DNA of 64,000 nt from Rebecca billardiae RCC1528. Taxonomy: Eukaryota; Protista; Haptophyta. The translations under genes and the position numbers were made by a program. Location of the stretch: NCBI GenBank assembly GCA_965240325.2, contig OZ251246.1:806001-870000 (forward strand), given 5' to 3'. Position 1 is the first letter of the stretch, and every line of letters begins with the position of its first letter. The notes beneath the pieces were generated by a model. That model did not search any database. It saw only the letters and a program-made list of their open reading frames with translations, and was not told where the DNA came from. Below, in pieces: positions 8,620-63,291 of this stretch.

Positions 8620-9058
8620 CCTCAGGCCGCGGCGCCGGCCTTAGAGTGAACGACGCAGCGGTGAAGACTTATACTGACGAAGCAGGCGATGCTTATTTAT
8701 TTGTAGCAGTGATGATGACGACGATGCATGTAGTGCACCTGCTTTTCAGTTTTTACTTGGCTGGCCCATATACCCCTCCGGAGGGCAAACTGTGATCCAG
8801 CCCGGCACTGAAATCGCCTCTGAGCTGATGACGCGATAAGACTAGGTCTAGTAGGCTCTCTCTCTCAGTCTCTCTCTCTCTCTCTCTCTATTTAAAACAA
8901 TATATATATATTAATAAACTATATGATACACTCGTCGTCGCCTATTCATAGCCGACCCGTGACGCTCGTGGTGGCGTCACAATGCTGATATTGCTCAGTC
9001 ACTGTCAGTCACGCCACACGTGACACGGGCCTCATGACTCATCACTCACGGTCACTCT

Positions 9059-9575
9059 GACTCATTCTATGATTTAACGACACAGGTAGGACGGCGCAGG
9101 TCTCCTGATTCGTCGTCGGCAGTGCCCGATCGTCGACACGAGGTCGGCGCTGGTGGCAGAGCATAGCCTGAACCGCGCGATCGAATGGCTTGAGCGCGGC
9201 CTTGAGCTGCTGGAGCGCGATATCCACCTGCGCTGCGCGGCTCCGCATGGACCTGCTGTGCGGTGTGCCCCGAGCGAGGGCGAGGGTGCAGGTCCGGATG
9301 TCAGACGGCCGTCTCAGCCGCTGGGCCCTGGCGGGTGATCCGGCGGTGATGTAGTCGTCCCCGTGTGCCCTGCGCGGCCGCGTGCGCGCTTGCCGCTCTG
9401 CTCAGCTGGCTTGCTGGCGGCGGCTGGCGCTGCTGCGGCGTGCAGGGTATGGCACGCTTCAGTGCCTCGCGCGGACTCGGGACTGCTGCGCATCCTCGTC
9501 GTCCGAGTCGTCGTCCATGGACGAGTCTCGGTCCGCGTGGGGGACTCAGCAGCTGGAGCAGGCGCAGGTGACTCA
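9059..9575 (-). repeat. Dispersed decayed repeat, family T (copies at ~15699, ~34889, ~52258)
   Basis: Shares ATTCTATGATTTAACGACACAGG...CTCCTGATTCGTC and several hundred bp with 52258-52700. Confidence 0.75.
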
Positions 9576-16823: not shown

Positions 16824-17081
16824 ATATAGCATTCGTCACAGCAGCAGTGCCAGAATCTGAGCGGGCCCGACGGAGAATGTGACCGGCCGTCCGGCGGCCC
16901 GGTCAGTGGTCACTAGTAGTAGTGACTAGGCGATATGTGACGATGTCCAACGACGATGAGTGCGGCTCGCGCGGCGCTCTACTAGTCTAACAAATCGCGG
17001 GCCTCCCGGAACGGTCCGTCCGACGGCCTGCTTACTCGGTCGGGGCTTGCAATGTACATATGGCGGCCGGAATATGCATAT

Positions 17082-18916: not shown

Positions 18917-18962
18917 ATATATATAGTTATATATATATATTATAATAATAGCGCACTCACTG

Positions 18963-19300
18963 GCGGGGGGCGACAGCCGCGGCTGCCGCCTGCCCGCAGC
19001 TGCTCGCCGCTAGGTCGCCGCGGGTGGCGACATCCCGTCACTCGGCGACATCGACTACGCGACCTCACCCTCATCCAAAATGCTCCAGACGAAGGCGCTC
19101 GCGGCCCGGCGGCCGGCGGCGGCATCTGCCGTCGCCGCCGCGTGCCCCCGGAGGCGGGAGGGACCAGGCCAAAGTGGTGCTCCGCACCCCGCGGCCCCGC
19201 TCCCGACTCCCGTAGGGCGGGGGTAGGGCTGCGGGTGGCGCACTGCCTGCCACCTGGTCGGAAGGCGCGGACGCATTCTATGTGTAATGTGTCTGCTGCA
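18963..19300 (+). repeat. Degenerate copy of repeat family S
   Basis: Aligns with 37730-37990 and 62620-62880 (GGGGGCGACAGCCGCGGCTGCC...GGAAGGCGCGGACGCATTCTATGTG). Confidence 0.8.
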
Positions 19301-27826: not shown

Positions 27827-29636
27827 CACCGCTTGGTGATCGCTCCCGCCTTTCATCGGCGCGATCTCATCACACAGATGTTTAGGAGATCCATTGAAAT
27901 GATTATATGCGCTCCGGCAGGGATCGAGATGAATATATTATTGAGCGTTCAGGGTGACCGCTTTTGAATTATAAACGACTCTGCACATTACCTATAGGCG
28001 ACGTGGTCGCGCGTGTTGATATTCGCGCGGCCACTCCTGCACTCCATAGGCCATCTAATGCTTCGTCGTAGAGAGCTTGCGCACGCTCATTGGCCATCGC
28101 TTTGCGGCTCGGTCGAATCTTAACCACAGAGATGAGAAAACGTGCAGAGATTCTCGAGCTGCGTTTCGTCGCTCCAGAAGCGCCTTGTTATTGTTCTCTG
28201 CTCAAAACGCATCAAAGTAGATGAGTTAACCACTGCAGTTACCTGTACGCTGGGTGCGGCGCGCATCTCGAGCACTCGATCGAGGATCTGGTGAACAGCG
28301 GTTGAGGGCGGCGGTAAAAGCGGTATCGTGGGGGGCGGAATCTTCATCAATAGCTACCGTGCAAAAATCAACGCGCTGTTCATACATAACCGAACTGTGA
28401 GCGCCTGAACGGGTGGGCATTAACCCCCAGGTAGATACCCGCGACGAAACATGGCGGCAGCGCCCCCCGCCACCCCGCCACCCCCCCCCCCCAATGTAGC
28501 TAGCACTGCGGGCGACACGCGCGGTGCTCGTCTCGCGTGGCGCGGCGTCGGACCGGTCGCGGGCTGGGCAGATTGACGCATCTATACATTCTTCGGGCTC
28601 TACCGCCTCAGGTCCGTGCACGCGCGCCTCTCTCGCCGCTCACGTGGGGCTCGCTAGTCGCTTTCACCTGTCGAGCCGCGGCCCCGTCGGCAAGTTAAAG
28701 TTTCACTCTTTTCAGGCGCCGGTTCGGGCTGGACAGCGAGCAGCTGGAACTCGAAATGGGCGGAAATCGGCTAGCTCAGACGCATTCTGCGCGGTGATCT
28801 GGTGGTGTGTGTGAAGTTTGGATGCAGCCGATTTCTGGTTAGACCTTGTTGTAAGCACTCCCACGTCATGAATTCATGATGGCACTCCCGACCGGCTCTG
28901 CTCGCAGCGACTTCGGTCGGTGCGAGCACGACGGGCACGCGTACTGTACGCGAGGTGAGGCGGCGCAATGAACCGCGCCCCGATGGCGCCGATTCGCCCC
29001 AGCCGCTGACTGCGACGGCCGCCGATGGCGATGCGGGTCCGCCCGGCATCGGCTGCGCCATGCAGCAGTTAGTAGTTACACGTAACTCCCTTGGACAGGA
29101 CTATCTTTGTCAAAGGGTGTCCCGGAGTCAGTCCGAGTGTAATATCGTCGGGCCGAACCGTGCTGACGCCGCGCCCGCATACTGCTCAATACGGTTCTAC
29201 GCCAGTCGGGCAGTCAGAGCGGGCTGCGTCTGCTGGACCCAGCGCGTCGTCGTAACACCGGACCGTAAGTACTAACTACAACTTCAACTGACGAGCCACC
29301 GTCACTGTGAGTGACTAGCCACTAGGAGTGTGTATAGGACTGGTCGTCCGAGGTCGCCGCGCAGAACCGGTAGTTTATTACGACCGTCGTAGTCTGAGTA
29401 GAACTTCAGACACGCGGGTCGTCGGGCCGGAGCAGGCTTAGAGGCTACCTGATGAGTACTCATCAATGACAATATATATATAGACTACGACAGACTCTAG
29501 CTCAGTACGTTAGTCTATATCGTAGTTTATACCGTATACGGCGGCCGTCGTAACAGCACGGAAGTTCAAGTGTGACGTATCACCGGCAGCGAAACTCGAA
29601 AGCAGAGTCTCCAATCTCTCCATCTTCTTGCGATCG

Positions 29637-31804: not shown

Positions 31805-32060
31805 GCACGCGGGCGACCGGGGTCGTTGCAGGTCGCACGACGGAATCACGCCGGTGAGTCTGGTGCCTTCGCAGGGTTGACGAGTCGACGAGACAATTAT
31901 TGGCAGCTGAACTTGGATGCGGCGGCGGATGGTGCGCTGAGCTCGATTTTGCCGGTCGGAACGATATCAAATAGAGAAAAGAGGCCGCGGCTGACGGGTC
32001 TTTCGGCCCACATAATGACCAGAATGTGCCGTTGACCTACTTTACCTATCAACTCCCTAC

Positions 32061-33172
32061 CAAGGGTGTCCAGGGTCCGCAACAGCCAGTGCGCAGCGCG
32101 GCAGAGGCTGTGACATCGCGAGGTCGCCGCTCGCCAGTGGGACTCGCCCGCCCGCCGCCGTGCACGGCGGCGGAGCCGCTCGCGCCGTGCGCTCCTGCGG
32201 CCGTCGGATCGGGCTGCGTAGGCGGCGCGCGGCTTGGGCCGTCGCTGAGCCACCCAGCGCCCCTCGCTGCGCCGCGCGCCTTCCTCGTCCTCGCCTCCTC
32301 CGCGCCTTGAAGCAGCACGCACACGCGCGGCGCCGCCACAAAAGCAGCGCAGGCGCTCGCGTGCAAGCGCGCGCGCGCAGCGCGCGACGGACTCGACTCG
32401 GTGTTCGAGCCGCTGCGGGGACATGCAGTGCTATCACATGCGCGCGCGACGCCACCTCGAGCCTGCGCGTTTGACCGTCAGTGCACGCTGATGCACGTTA
32501 CAAAATGGTCTGACTTGGCATCATCACACGTGCGACGGAAGCTTCCACAACGGGCCTTGAGTACGTCGACGCGATCGATGCGGGGACGGTCATGCTTGCG
32601 TGCGCTTCTCTTGTGGTCTCCACGCTTGCTGAGAAGCGCCGCGTACGTAGCTGTCATCGTGTCTTGCCTAAGAAGTCGTCCTGACGCATGGCAGGTTCTG
32701 GTCAGATTGGGCCTACTTCAACACGAGGACGTGTGAGCATTTGGCGCGTGACGGTCACAGCGATGCGCAAGTTCGAGGTGGCGTCGCGCGCGCATGTGAT
32801 GGTGCTGCATGCCCCCGCAGCGGCTCGAACACCGAGTCGAGTCCGTCGCGCGCTGCGCGCGCGCGCTTGCACGCGAGCGCCTGCGCTGCTTTTGTGGCGG
32901 CGCCGCGCGTGTGCGTGCTGCTTCAAGGCGCGGAGGAGGCGAGGACGAGGAAGGCGCGCGGCGCAGCGAGGGGCGCTGGGTGGCTCAGCGACGGCCCAAG
33001 CCGCGCGCCGCCTACGCAGCCCGATCCGACGGCCGCAGGAGCGCACGGCGCGAGCGGCTCCGCCGCCGTGCACGGCGGCGGGCGGGCGAGTCCCACTGGC
33101 GAGCGGCGACCTCGCGATGTCACAGCCTCTGCCGCGCTGCGCACTGGCTGTTGCGGACCCTGGACACCCTTG
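32061..33172. mobile_element. Fold-back MITE with ~410-bp TIRs (CAAGGG..CCCTTG) and 7-bp TSD TCCCTAC
   Basis: 32061-~32470 is the reverse complement of ~32760-33172. TCCCTAC at 32054-32060 and 33173-33179. Confidence 0.88.
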
Positions 33173-34055
33173 TCCCTACCCACCGGCCTCATCGATTCCT
33201 CGAATCGAGCGTGATGATTCTGATGACCCGGACTGCTCTGCCGCCTCTGCGACGAACGTCTCGTCGCCGTTCCTGCTCAAGGGATGGCGAGGCCACTTAA
33301 AGGGTGGCCTCGCCGCCGCGCTGAGGCCACCCTTCGGTGTATTGCTACCGCAGAACTTTCAGGAAACGACAGTCCCGCCGCTGCGCGCCCCATGTTCGTG
33401 CGCGGTGCGGGTGACGGGCCGGCGCGGGGGACGCCGGCTCGCGTTCCGAAGCGGGCGGTAGCTCAAGCTGGCGACCTCGCTTGGGCGGCGGCAGTGGCGC
33501 TGTTGCATGCCTTTCGCATTCCGTGCGTTTGTATGCGATCTCGCGCTCCCGCTCGTCGCCACGCCGCGTGCGACCGTCCACGCCACGGCCTTCCGCGCTG
33601 CTTGCAGAAGGCTTGCGTAGCGCGGACACGGCCGCGGAGAGCCCAGAGCGCCCGCCGCGAGCGCGACGCCCCGCAAATCGTCAGACTCACGACTTCTGGG
33701 GTCTGACAGAAAATCGATAGGTCTGCACCCTCGCCTGACATGCCCCAGAGGTCAGCACGACCGTCAGAACGGTGATCCTGGCCCCTGGCTTGCCCATCCG
33801 CCTTCGCATGAGCACCACGCCGGTCGTGCCGACGTGCGGGGACGTGGAAGTGGACGTGAGAGTGGTCGAAAAGTCCTGAAGGAAAGCCGCTGCTTAAAGT
33901 CTTCAGTCCTAAACTACGCGCTGCCGACCGGCGAGTGCAACGCCGGCCCCCTGGTCCCGGACGTTGCACTCGCGCGTTGGATCGCGGGACGGGCATCACG
34001 CGCGCCATGGCATCGGCCGGCTGCCCTTCGCCCCTTCCGGCTCGGTGAGCAGGGC

Positions 34056-37569: not shown

Positions 37570-38026
37570 TGCGACATCGACTACCACCTCATCTGCTTCA
37601 TCGCCCAGAGCGCGCTAGGCGGCGCGCTCACTCTCCAAGCCCCTCTTCTGCAGCTGCGCGCCGCTTGGCCGGCGCGCGGCGACGCGTACTACGACCTCAT
37701 CCTCATCCAGGCGCCCACGCGGGCGCACGGGGGCGACAGCCGCGGCTGCCGCTTGCCGGAGCTGCTCGCTGCTAGGTCGGCGGGCGGCGACATCGACTAC
37801 GACCTCACCCTCATCCAAGTGCTCCGGAAGGCGCTCGGCCGCGGCGGCATCTGCCGTCGCCGCCGCGTGCCCCAGGCCGAGGCGGTGCTCCATCCCCGGC
37901 CCCGCTCCCGTAGGGGGGCAGGGCTGCGGGTGGCGCACTGTCTGACCTGGACGGAAGGCGCGGACGCATTCTATGTGTCTGTTGCACTCTGAGCCTGACG
38001 CTTGTCCGATGCTGCCACGTCGTTAA
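37570..38026 (+). mobile_element. Repeat family S (SINE-like or 5'-truncated LINE) ending CCACGTCGTTAA-(TA)n
   Basis: Near-identical to 62590-62918; three internal GACATCGACTACGACCTC-like subrepeats. Confidence 0.75.
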
Positions 38027-38568
38027 ATATATATATGCATATATATATATATAGATAGATAGATAGATAGCTAGCTAGATAGATACATCAGATAGATACT
38101 GATAGATAGATATGAGATAGCAGATCTATAGCAGATCATAGCAGATAGCAGATTAGCAGATAGCAGATAGCAGATAGTAGATAGCAGATACGGCAGATAC
38201 GTATCATCGCGTATAGTAATGGCATGCCGATCGGAACGCTGTTCCCGGCCGTCGGCGGATATAATCATGACGAATGAATATGACGATCGTTAGATAGATA
38301 GATAGCAGATAGCAGATAGCAGATAGCAGATAGCAGATTATAGCAGATAGCAGATAGCAGATAGCAGATAGCAGATACGGCAGATACGTATCATCGCGTA
38401 TAGTAATGGCATGCCGATCGGAACGCTGTTCCCGGCCGTCGGCGGATATAATAATGACGAATGAATATGACGATCGTATCGATGTGACACGGCCCAGCAA
38501 GCAGTAGCAATACTTTATTCAGCAATTTCATTATATATATATATATGCATACATATATATATATATAT
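38027..38568. repeat. Compound microsatellite (TA)n/(AGAT)n/(AGCAGAT)n with a ~185-bp tandem duplication
   Basis: The unique block AGATACGGCAGATACG...GAATATGACGATCGT occurs twice (~38187-38290, ~38373-38477). Confidence 0.9.
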
Positions 38569-38883
38569 TAACGACGTGGTATGCAACGGGCAGGCGTCAG
38601 AGTCAGCAAGTTGTAGCAGCAGATCGAGCAGCAGAGACAAACACCAGGATCAGCGCTCCTCGCCGTCGTCCCCCCCCTCGTAGTCGGTAAGTCGCCCATC
38701 GATCACTCCATCGCCGAGCGGATTGCGGAAGCTCGACGCACCGTGACCGTCTGGCGTCGACGCGCGCGCGCCACCGCGGTGGTCGCGGTGCCACGCGTCG
38801 TCAGCCGTCGTCTCGAAGTAGTATCGTCGTATGCAGCGCCCCCGCAGCGGGCGCGTGCCCCCGGGCACACGTGCGCCATGCGC
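38568..38883 (-). mobile_element. 5'-truncated copy of the CRE-like LINE 3' end
   Basis: Aligns to 56565-56855; ends at (TA)n. Confidence 0.8.
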
Positions 38884-51144: not shown

Positions 51145-51159
51145 ATATATCAAGGGAGT

Positions 51160-52257
51160 CAAGGGTGCCCGCGCCCCAGTGGCGCGCTCGGCGGATGTTG
51201 ATTGTTGGGATACACCTTTTTGCCCGCGGCCCTGCGGCGGCGGCGGCGATGGCGTGCTCCGCTGGCGGGGCGAGCGCACGGGGCACGGCGCTGCGGGCGC
51301 GGATGTGCCCGCGAAGCCGGCGCGTGCGGACGGGCTGTTGCGGGAGAGCATCTGGCGCCCTCCTGCGCCGCGCGACTTGCGCCACGCCTCTTTCGCCTCG
51401 GCTCAGAGCAGCGCGCACGCACGCGCCGCCTCAAGGCCAGCCTTGCCGCGCCGCAGCCGACCGCGCGCGCGCCGTGCGCGGCGTGGTCGGGAAGGAACGG
51501 GCGCTGCTGCCGGGCGAGATGGCGACGTCATGGGCGCACGCCATGCCGCCCCGCGGCGCCGCGAAAGAGCACGAGAACGGATCCGCACAGCTGTTGACGA
51601 GTGCTGATTTCTTGCCGTGCCTGAAGCCAGACCTGAGCTCGAAGAAGATGATGAAAGAGCATCAGCGCGAGGAAAGCGTCGCACCCAGCACTTCTACATG
51701 ACCACGCGGTGATGAACATTCATGTAAGAGTAGCCCGCGTGCCCGTCTGGCACTGTTCTGTGTCTCAATGATCGTCCCGACAACGGTCACGACCGCGAGG
51801 CAGTGCACACCATTTGTGACAAGTCGAAAAGGCGTGCAAACGGACCGACGACACTCTCGTCAAGGCGTGGCGGGGCGGCATGGCGTGCGCCTATGACGTC
51901 GCCATCTCGCCCGGCAGCAGCGCCCGTTCCTTCCCGACCACGCCGCGCACGGCGCGCGCGCGGTCGGCTGCGGCGCGGCAAGGCTGGCCTTGAGGCGGCG
52001 CGTGCGTGCGCGCTGCTCTGAGCCGAGGCGAAAGAGGCGTGGCGCAAGTCGCGCGGCGCAGGAGGGCGCCAGATGCTCTCCCGCAACAGCCCGTCCGCAC
52101 GCGCCGGCTTCGCGGGCACATCCGCGCCCGCAGCGCCGTGCCCCGTGCGCTCGCCCCGCCAGCGGAGCACGCCATCGCCGCCGCCGCCGCAGGGCCGCGG
52201 GCAAAAAGGTGTATCCCAACATCCGCCGAGCGCGCCACTGGGGCGCGGGCACCCTTG
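51160..52257. mobile_element. Fold-back MITE with ~390-bp TIRs (CAAGGGTG..CACCCTTG)
   Basis: 51160-~51552 is inverted at ~51872-52257; same terminus and similar length to 32061-33172; no clear TSD. Confidence 0.85.
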
Positions 52258-53300
52258 ACTCATTCTATGATTTAACGACACAGGTAGGACGACGCGGGTC
52301 TCCTGATTCGTCGGCGGCAGTGCCCGATCGTCGACACGAAGTCGGCGTTGGTGGCAGAGCATAGCCTGCACCGCTATCGTAAAGCTTGAGCGCGGCCTTG
52401 AGCTGCTGGAGCGCGATCCACCTGCGCTGCGCGGCTCGCATGGCCCTGCTGTGCCCCGAGCGAGGGCGATGGTGCAGGTCCGGATGTCAGCTGGCAGTCT
52501 CAGCCGCTGGTAGCAGCTGGTCGTACCTGCCCCGTGCTCCCCGGGCGGTCGCGTACGCGCTTGCCGCTCGAGCCAGCTGGCTGGCTGGCGGCGGCTGGCG
52601 CTGCGGCGTCGTCCAGGGTGCGCTTCGTCCGCTGCTGCGGCAGCTCCTCGTCGTCCAAGTCGTCGCCCGGGGGCGAGTCTCGGTCCTCGTGGAGCGGGGC
52701 AGCAGGGACTGGCGTGGGTGCAGCGGTCGGTGCCAGGCGCGCCGCCTTGCGCGCCTGGCGTTCCTTGACGGCGCGGCGCGTCGAGGAGCGACGGCTCGAT
52801 GGAGAACGAATCCGTCGGCCCTCGGCGTCGCGCCGTTGCCCGCGCTTCCCACGCCGGGGCTTCTTCTTCCGCTTCTGAGAGTGCTGCTGCTCGTCGTTCG
52901 CCTGCAGCTCCTCAGCGTCCGAGCCCTGCGCGGCGGGCGGGCGCACCGGCGAGGCCGGCGTGCGCGCTGCGTGCTGGGCGGTCCGCGGGGGAGCAGTAGG
53001 AGGCACGCCACGACCTCCCTTGCGCCGCCGGCGGGGGCCGGCGGTTTTTCCCTGTGGAGAAGCAGGGCCAGCCTCCTGCGTGGCCGTCCTGGCGATGGAG
53101 TGCGTCAGCCGCGTGCCATCCGCAAGCGTGATGGTCCACCAGCGCGAGAGGCCATCCGCGGCGGTGCGCTTCGATCCGTCACACAGTGCGCGGTCGGAGA
53201 AGCGCAGCTCGCCGGGGAAAGTCCCCTCGGGCTCGGTGTTCGTGGCGACGCTGGGCATCCTCGGTCTACGTGGCCATGCTGGGAGAAAGGGTGACTCCCT
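52258..53300 (-). pseudogene. Longest copy of repeat family T, with a decayed basic/acidic ORF
   Basis: Shares sequence with 9059-9575. Minus-strand frame QKRKKKPRRGKR..DDLDDEE..SG* continues past the stop; bounded by (TA)n at ~53304. Confidence 0.5.
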
Positions 53301-56269: not shown

Positions 56270-56455
56270 CTTTGACGAAGACGCGATTATATTGTATATC
56301 GTCAAATATATTGAAGCGCGATGATGATCTGACGCGACGATACATACGTATGTATTGTATCAGTATGTACATGTATGTAATGTATGTATGTATGTCGTAT
56401 GTATATGTCGTAGTAGTATGTATATACATGTATATGTATATATATATACATATAT

Positions 56456-56539
56456 TTAACGACGACGTGGCAGCAGCATCGGACAAGCGTCAGGCTCAGA
56501 GTGCAACGTGAGACACATAGAATGCGTCTGCGCCTTCCG
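56456..56539 (-). mobile_element. Short 3'-end copy of family S
   Basis: Reverse complement of ~37953-38026 with small insertions; flanked by TA repeats. Confidence 0.8.
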
Positions 56540-56564
56540 ATGTATATATATATATATATATATA

Positions 56565-57100
56565 TTAACTACGACGCGTGGTATGCAACGGGCAGGCGTC
56601 AGAGTCAGCAAGCTGTAGCAGCAGATCGAGCAGCAGAGACAAACACCAGGATCAGCGCTCCTCGCCGTCGTCCCCCCCCCTCGTAGTCGCCCATCACTCC
56701 ATCGCCGAGCGGAAGCTCGACGCACCGTCTGGCGTCGACGCGCGCGCGCCACCGCGGTGGTCGCGGTGCCACGCGTCGTCAGCCGTCGTCTCGAAGTAGT
56801 CGTCGTATGCAGCGCCCCCGCGGGCGCGTGCCCCCGGGCGCACGTGCGCCATGCGCGCGCGGGCGATGAGCATCTTGGCCTGGCCACGCAGGCAGCGCAT
56901 GCCCAGCTCGCGCCCGGCATGGTGCCGAGCAGCGCGCGCTCGGCGGCGGGGCGCGAGGGCGCGCTGAGGCGCGCGCGCCACGTGTCCCGCCCCATCTTAT
57001 TGGCGATCTTCTTGGGGGTGAGGTCCACCTCCGCGCTCCACTCGCCGAACGCCCCCACGACAATCGGGACGATCGCGGGGAAGGTGTCGAGCCGCGCCTC
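56565..57100 (-). mobile_element. 5'-truncated non-LTR retrotransposon (CRE-like, RLE C-terminus plus 3' UTR)
   Basis: IVPIVVGAFGEWS.EV....KKIA...RELGMRCLRGQAKML resembles the P.vve.fG.w / L...lqrgna end of RLE domains; one frameshift; (TA)n at both ends. Confidence 0.65.
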
Positions 57101-57114
57101 GTATATATATATAT

Positions 57115-57592
57115 GTGGGGTTATTGGTACAATAACTGATTGTCTAAGACGACGACAAGAACGCCGGGCGCCAGCGCCGCTCATCAGCCACATCGCCCTC
57201 TACCAGACCATCGCCTCAAAGCGCTGCTCCCGGACAAACAGTCTGTCCGGGTTTGTCGCCGCGGAGATCTGCTGTTTCCGGCGCCCCCTGGCTGCTTCGC
57301 CAGGCGCGGGCGCGCGAGATGGCTGCAGCCGGGCTCGTGGCCCTGCGTCGCCGGCGGCGGCGGCTCGCACGCGGGTGGCGCGTCGCGTGCACCGACCAAC
57401 ATCTTTCGGCCGCGCCGCGTCTCGTCGACGGCGAGCGGCATGCCCACCGCATCTGCTGCCGCTCGCCAAGGCATGAGGACACGTAAATCCCACTGAGTAG
57501 GAACACACGCAGCCGCCTCGGCATCGACATGCCAGGCGGCGTGCCCACCTTCGGCCAGCTGTTGGCGTCGGCGTTCACGAGGACGGCTAGAC
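57115..57592 (+). mobile_element. Family 2 A+B deletion derivative
   Basis: 57115-57410 matches repeat A and 57415-57592 matches repeat B of the 17-19 kb element. Confidence 0.9.
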
Positions 57593-62544: not shown

Positions 62545-62918
62545 CTGACTCTGACGCCTGCCCGTTGCATACCACGTCGTTAATATATGATCCTCATCCA
62601 GGCGCCCACACGGGCGCACGGGGGCGACAGCCGCGGCTGCCGCTTGCCGGAGCTGCTCGCCGCTAGGTCGGCGGGCGGCGACATCGACTACGACCTCACC
62701 CTCATCCAAGTGCTCCGGAAGGCGCTCGGCCGCGGCGGCATCTGCCGTCGCCGCCGCGTGCCCCAGGCCGAGGCGGTGCTCCATCCCGGCCCCGCAATCC
62801 CGTAGGGGGGCAGGGCTGCGGGTGGCGCACTGTCTGGCCTGGACGGAAGGCGCGGACGCATTCTATGTGTCTGTTGCACTCTGAGCCTGACGCTTGTCCG
62901 ATGCTGCCACGTCGTTAA
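62543..62918 (+). mobile_element. ~40-bp LINE 3' tail (62543-62583) followed by a family S copy (62590-62918)
   Basis: Both end CCACGTCGTTAA followed by ATAT. Confidence 0.8.
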
Positions 62919-63291
62919 ATATATCAATATATGATCGGCTACTACGCCGATCGGGAGAGTTTAATGGGCCCTGACTCAGAGTGATAAGTTAGTGGGCCTT
63001 GGTGGGCTGCCTGACCCGCATCATCTGATGTGAGTGAGTGATGATGTGACAATACCGATCCGTAGACCGTACGTCCGCCAGTGCCCCTTCGGGGCGGTCT
63101 TAGCCCCGGCCGCCTGGTCGCTTCCGGTGCGGACCTATATCGCCCACACGCGCGGTAGGGAGCACCGCCCACGCTTCTTCTTCAGTCTAACAGTATATTA
63201 TTATTTATTCGGCGAGAAAAGAGCGCTAAATAAGTAAAAATGGCGGCGGACGATGATATTGATGAAGATATCGCGATGACGATGTTCGTCG

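Follow-up and report, generated by a model that had tools for sequence, protein, structure and literature searches.

Two copies of one repeat in this stretch of haptophyte DNA differ from each other chiefly by short gaps, and the question that they raise is what process has added the extra bases. The window, by which the whole analyzed stretch of 64,000 nucleotides is meant, covers positions 806001-870000 of contig C30 in a 72 Mb assembly; the two copies belong to a retroelement family, here called family 1, and are placed as follows.

38568-38883, minus strand: copy A, a 5'-truncated family 1 copy covering consensus alignment positions 2-308.
56565-56969, minus strand: copy B, a near-consensus full-length family 1 copy beside a (TA)n tract, with three small private insertions.

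The initial annotation put about 2 substitutions and about 8 insertions between these copies, and a recount by alignment of 38549-38883 with 56546-56856 (MAFFT, BLAST) bore this out, giving 3 mismatches and 9 gaps with 36 nt gapped in total. When the differences were polarized by a consensus from 60-120 genomic copies, copy A was found to carry six private insertions (8, 4, 7, 6, 2, and 3 nt), three substitutions, and a 1-nt change in a C-run, and copy B to carry one private insertion of 3 nt (56568-56570) and two of 2 nt (56575-56576 and 56915-56916).

Family 1 is ~430 bp long, and every copy opens with TTAACGACGTGG immediately following a (TA)n tract; the genome contains 378 matches to a 25-nt anchor near this (TA)n-side end. 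The copies have a common tail end and variable 5' stops, the break usually being followed by more TA repeat, and because most breaks adjoin TA tracts the 5' truncations are real. In copy A the RNA sense is the minus strand, and the 3' end, ...CCACGTCGTTAA, adjoins the (TA)n tract at 38527-38567. Judged from these sequence features, family 1 would represent 5'-truncated copies of a non-LTR retroelement targeting (TA)n, with the plus strand in the sense of first-strand cDNA. An Rfam search of 56300-57500 returned chance microRNA-like matches to TA hairpins only and no known RNA. Several other properties of the family were observed. Its copies are often found in short tandem series of partial copies spaced ~100 bp apart, or in inverted pairs that share truncation points, which points to template jumping during integration or to a local duplication at the DNA level:

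C8:2804962-2805196, C10:1754178-1754295, C16:2322112-2322691, and C7:1598150-1598873: examples of tandem or inverted family 1 copies.

The C-run at consensus position 123 (~38670 in the window) ranges from ~7 to 25 bases among copies, a variation due either to true slippage in the homopolymer or to errors in long reads. Among the first 100 exact anchor matches listed, all fall on contigs C1, C3, C5, C7, C8, and C10 and none on C2, C4, C6, and C9; these four, expected to be large contigs, may have a different origin.

To obtain a mutation spectrum, 96 family 1 copies were sampled solely by exact anchor, only sequence beyond the anchor was analyzed, and the variable C-run was excluded. In the 77 usable copies (18.0 kb) the private substitutions numbered 56; the 61 insertions added 335 nt, and 13 nt were lost in 4 deletions. 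Measured against the 60-120-copy consensus, each non-homopolymer insertion was private to one copy, and many substitutions were shared subfamily markers; the long state is therefore derived, and a microhomology-mediated deletion in a master copy was ruled out. The young subfamily (134A, named for the A that it has at consensus position 134) held 4 substitutions and 2 insertions in 6.4 kb, compared with 51 substitutions and 55 insertions in 11.1 kb of older copies, so that insertions build up with age at roughly one per substitution.

These counts also bear on whether the insertions could be errors of birth, made when the reverse transcriptase or the integration step of a (TA)n-targeting retroelement stutters during retrotransposition. 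Such an origin would accord with the fact that the signature was first met in three retroelement families with a common 3' tail, with the higher load of heavily truncated family 1 copies (~15 insertions/kb vs. ~3/kb in long copies), with 26 insertions in 24 older (134G) copies that have no private substitution, and with the tandem and inverted partial copies, which suggest a jump-prone enzyme. It is nevertheless very unlikely, as the load is low in the young subfamily and tracks substitutions in the older copies, a slip of the polymerase would not complement the junction bases in the manner described below, and scars of the same kind are found in an arm of a DNA transposon and in unique non-coding DNA.

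Insertion loads were overdispersed among copies (P = 5e-5), and the insertion-to-substitution ratio was heterogeneous (P = 0.003). Away from the (TA)n tail the decay in insertions was a weak gradient, confounded by the greater dirtiness of short copies. Clustering within copies was marginal (gaps of 20 bp or less made up 0.40 of the total vs. 0.32 expected, P = 0.04), and the idea of 'walking' elements, which would produce clusters on a scale of tens of bp inside copies, was set aside on this marginal signal.

The insertions themselves are of a distinctive kind. Their lengths are bimodal, with modes at 1-3 nt and at 7 nt, and 27 of the 59 insertions of at least 2 nt duplicate at least 2 adjacent bases around a filler of at most 2 nt, vs. 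6.2 ± 2.3 for randomized inserts (maximum 15 in 2000 trials); with at least 3 bases duplicated the count is 25 of 59, vs. 2.9 ± 1.6. The claim that the repeat copies diverge by duplication-plus-filler insertions thus stands well above chance. Trimming into the flanks, seen as net deletion, is nearly absent from the scars, and a number of insertions have a nested or complex structure in which the filler measures 6-75 nt.

The fillers, when considered together with the bases that surround the duplication, follow a rule. If w and y denote the two bases that border the duplicated block, an event has the form w X f1 f2 X y. Among the 18 X-ff-X events, f1 was the complement of y in 13 and f2 the complement of w in 12, so that 25 of 36 filler bases complement an outside base against 9 expected (P = 2.6e-8); both fillers were flipped in 9 of the 18 events and at least one in 16. 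One-base fillers obeyed the same rule in 6 of 6 cases, no enrichment was seen for the control mappings (transition, other transversion), and the plain P-nucleotide rule, by which the filler would complement the last base of X, did not hold. Since the fillers complement w and y, the block wXy is a target-site duplication that is present twice, with its two junction bases flipped.

Flipped junction bases of this type are known from transposon excision. In Ac/Ds footprints the base beside the departed element is complemented, as a result of hairpins formed on the flanks after a nick one base into the flank (PMC5873905), and the hAT, MULE, Transib, and RAG reactions all make hairpins on flanking DNA (PMC5499845). 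A hairpin model was accordingly formulated with a left arm T1..T(n-1), c_n, c_(n-1)... and a right arm ..., c_2, c_1, T2..Tn, with c_i denoting the base complementary to T_i; a product may consist of any prefix of the first arm followed by any suffix of the second, and zero untemplated bases are allowed. The model accounts for 26 of the 45 insertions of 5-11 nt, vs. 1 of 45 and 3 of 45 for the control mappings. A duplication of n = 7 is permitted by all but two of the fits and is the only solution for two of them, and the mode of the scar duplication length is 7 bp. Palindromic (P) nucleotides centered on the flipped base occur in several events, for example at 38682-38689 and at consensus position 221 in the copy at locus L166. 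The insertions of copy A illustrate the range:

38682-38689: 8-nt scar, fitted by the hairpin model with n = 7 only and with no untemplated base.
38698-38701: 4-nt insertion ATC-G-ATC, in which the filler is the complement of the preceding base.
38718-38724: 7-nt canonical scar GCGGA-TT-GCGGA, with duplication AGCGGAA and both junction bases flipped.
38740-38745: 6-nt scar ACCGT-G-ACCGT, in which the filler is the complement of the flanking C.
38822-38823 (TA) and 38844-38846 (GCA): two small private insertions, neither of which fits the hairpin model.

The model thus fits four of the six (8, 4, 7, and 6 nt). The first scar consists of the 7-bp duplication TAGTCGC present twice, with both junction bases complemented and one palindromic nucleotide added, and decomposes as TAGTCG + G / T A + AGTCGC; the third insertion was also recovered, at 38717, by the reference-free scan described below.

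The complement rule and the preference for a 7-bp unit are what set these scars apart from the products of spontaneous staggered or resected breaks repaired without transposons, whether by fill-in and end joining with a few untemplated bases or by templated insertion of the polymerase-theta type, either of which produces local duplications with filler. Generic staggered-break repair had been proposed for this repeat from the outset, and it has points in its favor, namely the excess of insertions over deletions (61 vs. 4), the nested and complex insertions with their long fillers, and the plain tandem duplications without flipped bases that make up 13 of the 32 three-nt insertions. It predicts neither the rule nor the 7-bp specificity, however, and joining by polymerase theta usually leaves deletions and microhomology, neither of which was seen; the fillers follow the complement rule and not direct templating. 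Break repair is for these reasons unlikely as the source of the scars, and excision by a hairpin-forming transposon is preferred.

Several lines of evidence place the scars beyond family 1 as well. Within the window, gap-dominated divergence was found in two further retroelement families and a scar in a DNA transposon:

18951-19285: insertion-riddled copy of a second (TA)n-tailed retroelement family, compared with clean copies at 37699-38032 and 62590-62924.
9058-9540: a copy of a third retroelement family, rich in insertions by comparison with 52256-52692.
51196-51202: 7-nt scar TGTTG-AT-TGTTG in one arm of a transposon, MITE-A, whose arm-to-arm alignment shows 1 insertion and 3 substitutions.
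8995-9065: stuttering intergenic chain of X-ff-X units, in which each unit with a 2-nt filler has at least one complement-flipped junction base.

The copy at 18951-19285 differs from the two clean copies by 18 insertions, 1 deletion, and 14 substitutions and contains a 7-nt scar, ATGTGTA, that the hairpin model fits, as it does a canonical 7-nt scar at 9256-9269 in the copy of the third family. The insertion at 51196-51202 is fitted from n = 7 upward and by neither control mapping, and it is a DNA-level event in sequence that was never reverse-transcribed. Of the other places at which the signature had initially been reported, 56457 holds 3-nt tandem duplications in agreement with the report, and the report for 10268 found partial backing in one weak X-f-X unit nearby (10243), with nothing more seen there.

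A reference-free scan was made for the canonical 14-mer with n = 7, both bases flipped, and a non-repetitive X. The window contains 27 such 14-mers, a count that came to 1 and 3 under the control mappings and averaged 6.8 ± 2.6 (maximum 14) in local first-order Markov simulations; n = 5 and n = 8 showed no excess and n = 9 a slight one. The density of canonical scars in the window is 0.84/kb in mid-GC non-coding DNA vs. 0.14/kb in GC-rich coding DNA, and a further 125 kb of fetched loci yielded 26 canonical n = 7 scars vs. 7 and 7 for the controls. Canonical 7-bp scars are present in unique, non-repeated non-coding DNA. As a separate observation, canonical n = 6 scars number 42 in the window vs. 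17.8 ± 4.3 simulated, which would indicate either a second element family with a 6-bp duplication or a trimmed form of the 7-bp scar. The proposal that insertions of this type explain the stuttering intergenic DNA is supported by the scar excess in the window and by the stretches cited for it, since 16901-16925 and 29271-29330 are chains of X-f-X units and 8995-9065 is the chain listed above. Two further approaches contributed little: when the other repeats of the fetched loci were compared all against all, 15 gaps of 5-11 nt resulted, too few to add weight (3 fit the hairpin model, two of these being one MITE-A site, and 0 fit the controls), and a k-mer spacing spectrum, computed as another test that needs no reference, was swamped by codon periodicity and tandem repeats and was uninformative.

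Candidates for the departing elements are found in the window itself, which contains members of two related groups of DNA transposons:

32061-33172: MITE-B, a non-coding DNA transposon 1112 bp long; its terminal inverted repeats measure 408 bp, and its termini read CAAGGGTG...CACCCTTG.
51151-52261: MITE-A, a related DNA transposon with long terminal inverted repeats and terminus CAAGGGAGTCAAGGGTG, its right end being clipped here.

The MITE-B copy in the window is flanked by the 7-bp duplication TCCCTAC (32054-32060 and 33173-33179); the genome contains ~36 copies, and perfect 7-bp duplications were present in 16 of 20 fetched copies as well as in that of the window. MITE-A is represented by 408 first-look candidates, with arms 98-100% identical and length unchanged, and has 7-bp duplications in the copies examined. 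Copies of MITE-A and MITE-B are 96-100% identical, a near-identity that points to recent mobility. The termini of both begin CAAGG. The terminal pattern of hAT elements is YARNG, which the CAAGG termini fit. Target-site duplications of hAT elements are normally 8 bp long, whereas 16 of the 20 fetched copies of MITE-B, its copy in the window, and the MITE-A copies have 7 bp.

MITE-B also served as a control for the family 1 spectrum. In 21 elements (23.3 kb; loci L091-L110 and the window copy), 62 private substitutions, 3 insertions, and 6 deletions were counted. Private substitutions were thus similar in frequency (2.7/kb vs. 3.1/kb in family 1) and alike in base spectrum, and deletions were similar as well (0.26/kb vs. 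0.22/kb), whereas insertions were ~25-fold fewer (0.13/kb vs. 3.4/kb), with no 5-11-nt scar in 23 kb of MITE-B copies. Because only the insertions differ, they represent an extra process laid over an ordinary background spectrum, and a genome-wide insertion bias was ruled out by the ordinary indel spectrum of MITE-B. Break repair does not predict this near absence of insertions at an equal load of substitutions and deletions. DNA transposons seem to avoid landing in MITE-B copies, and our guess at the cause of the escape would be a target or chromatin preference.

The same control weighs on two other explanations. A RIP-like mutator, directed at repeats and inserting short sequences into duplicated DNA, was also among the original proposals, and the uneven hits among family 1 copies (the overdispersion and ratio heterogeneity given above) would suit it. 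It deserves hardly any credence, as the most numerous and most similar repeats (the 134A subfamily, the MITE-A arms, and MITE-B) are the cleanest, the MITE-B spectrum is ordinary, canonical scars are common in non-repeated non-coding DNA, and the chemistry of the footprints is fully accounted for by transposon excision. An artifact of assembly or base calling in repeats, for which the C-run of ~7-25 bases at consensus position 123 is a typical long-read error site, can be given a next to negligible chance; read errors cannot yield 5-9-nt duplications with a complement rule and a 7-bp preference, and they would need to leave both the young subfamily and 23 kb of MITE-B untouched.

Transposon excision is thus retained as the preferred reading, and the part of MITE-A and MITE-B in it as makers of the scars is circumstantial, being drawn from the common 7-bp length. 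No copies of either were found within the 170 kb sampled around family 1 copies, no element-occupied site was found among 120 family 1 copies in the one assembly, where no site polymorphic for occupied, empty, and scarred states was seen, and MITE terminus motifs occurred at the 5' breaks of truncated family 1 copies in 1 of 79 cases, an unconvincing one.

A source of transposase was sought with protein family searches of the genome, and no hAT or P-type transposase was found with PF05699, PF14372, or PF12017. PF05699, the hAT dimerization domain, gave a single degenerate match with an internal stop, PF12017 gave no match, and PF14372 gave none either, in a control search that had no match in any genome. 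Considered as transposon ends, the inverted repeats that flank the PF05699 match were ruled out, as they are two retroelement tails. Beside this match, at L176:5790-7625 (contig C17), lies a Copia-type reverse transcriptase (RVT_2, E = 2e-41) in a 612-aa open frame. PF10551 had two matches in the genome, and the one examined is a MULE with a 9-bp duplication and termini unlike those of the MITEs. This element, at L174:2866-6631 (C23:326265-330030), is an apparently intact autonomous MULE with 128-bp inverted repeats and the 9-bp target-site duplication CCGCAGGCA, the PF10551 match being inside an open frame of 1051 aa. Canonical scars with a 9-bp unit were slightly in excess in the reference-free scan. 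An integrase-bearing family was also observed at 19 loci (e.g., C30:410792 and C30:975543), with ~19 near-identical copies and open frames mostly of 1900-2100 aa; by its sequence it appears to have been active very recently, and it was too young for its LTR pairs to be informative as a control.

The hairpin model speaks to the larger scars, and about two-thirds of all insertions are 1-4 nt long. For insertions of 3-4 nt the model did no better than the control mappings. Of the 36 insertions of 2 nt in family 1 (loci L031-L170, with window examples at 56575-56576 and 56915-56916), 23 are the dinucleotide CG, and GC, GG, and CC are rare. The CG insertions occur at many sites, nearly always beside C or G so as to create CCG, CGG, or CGCG, and the hairpin model covers them solely in C|CG|G contexts. 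Biased end-processing could produce such CG insertions under break repair. Insertions of 1-4 nt are found preferentially in those copies that also have large scars (odds ratio 10, P = 2e-4) and are absent from MITE-B, and they probably come from the same transposon traffic as the large scars.

Comparison with known systems brings out where the scars are familiar and where they are peculiar. Ac/Ds, a hAT system, is alike in that both copies of the target-site duplication are kept, the element-side base is complemented, and palindromic nucleotides are occasionally present (PMC5873905). It is unlike the present case in its 8-bp rather than 7-bp duplication, and here no hAT transposase was detected with the protein families searched and flank trimming is almost absent. 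Many MULEs and foldback elements have very long terminal inverted repeats, as the MITEs do, and one autonomous MULE is present in this genome; its 9-bp duplication and unrelated termini, however, differ from the scar pattern, and published excision of Muta1, also a MULE, is mostly precise, unlike the scars. RAG and Transib nick exactly at the border, from which palindromic additions are expected and not a flipped base. MULE, Transib, and RAG nevertheless resemble the model in placing hairpins on flanking DNA (PMC5499845). Footprints of Tc1/mariner elements and Stowaway MITEs are similar small insertions consisting of a duplication and a few bases (PMC4561436), but their filler derives from element termini between TA duplications, whereas here the filler follows the flanks and the duplications are not TA. 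Fungal RIP is comparable in outcome only, in that repeat copies are riddled with changes; it consists of homology-dependent C-to-T transitions, whereas in this genome the copies that are repeated most escape, unique DNA is hit as well, and the changes are transposon scars. End joining by polymerase theta also gives short insertions that copy nearby sequence and are sometimes nested, but typically with deletions and microhomology and without a fixed unit length or a complement rule.

Taken as a whole, the duplication-plus-filler insertions are best read as excision footprints of hairpin-forming, hAT-like cut-and-paste DNA transposons, mostly with a 7-bp duplication, a reading to which a probability of roughly three in four is assigned; for the 5-11-nt class, this original suggestion is strongly supported by both the complement rule and the 7-bp match to the MITEs. 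The course of events would be that an element integrates and duplicates its target, mostly over 7 bp (w-X-y); that on its leaving the transposase nicks one base into each flank and the flank is sealed as a hairpin; and that, when the hairpins are opened and the ends joined, the element-adjacent base becomes its complement, sometimes with a few palindromic bases. The residue would be wX + comp(y) comp(w) + Xy, which compared with unvisited sequence is a 5-9-nt insertion with X repeated around a 1-2-nt filler. The likely agents would be the abundant, near-identical MITEs with long terminal inverted repeats, 7-bp duplications, and CAAGG termini, and the scars would collect in neutral non-coding DNA, old family 1 copies included, at a rate close to that of point substitution.

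The footprint process as such is already well known; the haptophyte host is new, and the abundance, at ~1 scar per substitution, is notable. A broader and more tentative proposal would be that small length changes in non-coding DNA here arise mainly from transposon traffic and not from errors of the polymerase; that the MITEs are driven by a hairpin-forming transposase with a 7-bp stagger, possibly of a new hAT-related lineage; that scars equal substitutions in number and build the stuttering DNA; and that the same traffic, or a second element or repair step, inserts CG.

With the scars read as footprints, what looked like an exotic mutator becomes an archive of transposon activity that can be read. 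No reference copy is needed to count the scars (~0.8 canonical scars/kb of non-coding DNA in the window), which thus give access to past excision rates, target preferences, and hot regions. A bias toward small insertions and an intergenic DNA rich in short repeats can stem from mobile elements instead of a bias of replication or repair, and indel-to-substitution ratios of repeat copies here misrepresent the basic mutation spectrum, with consequences for indel-based dating, alignment models, and the annotation of this genome. The mobile elements of haptophytes have been little studied, and the scars offer a measure of them there.
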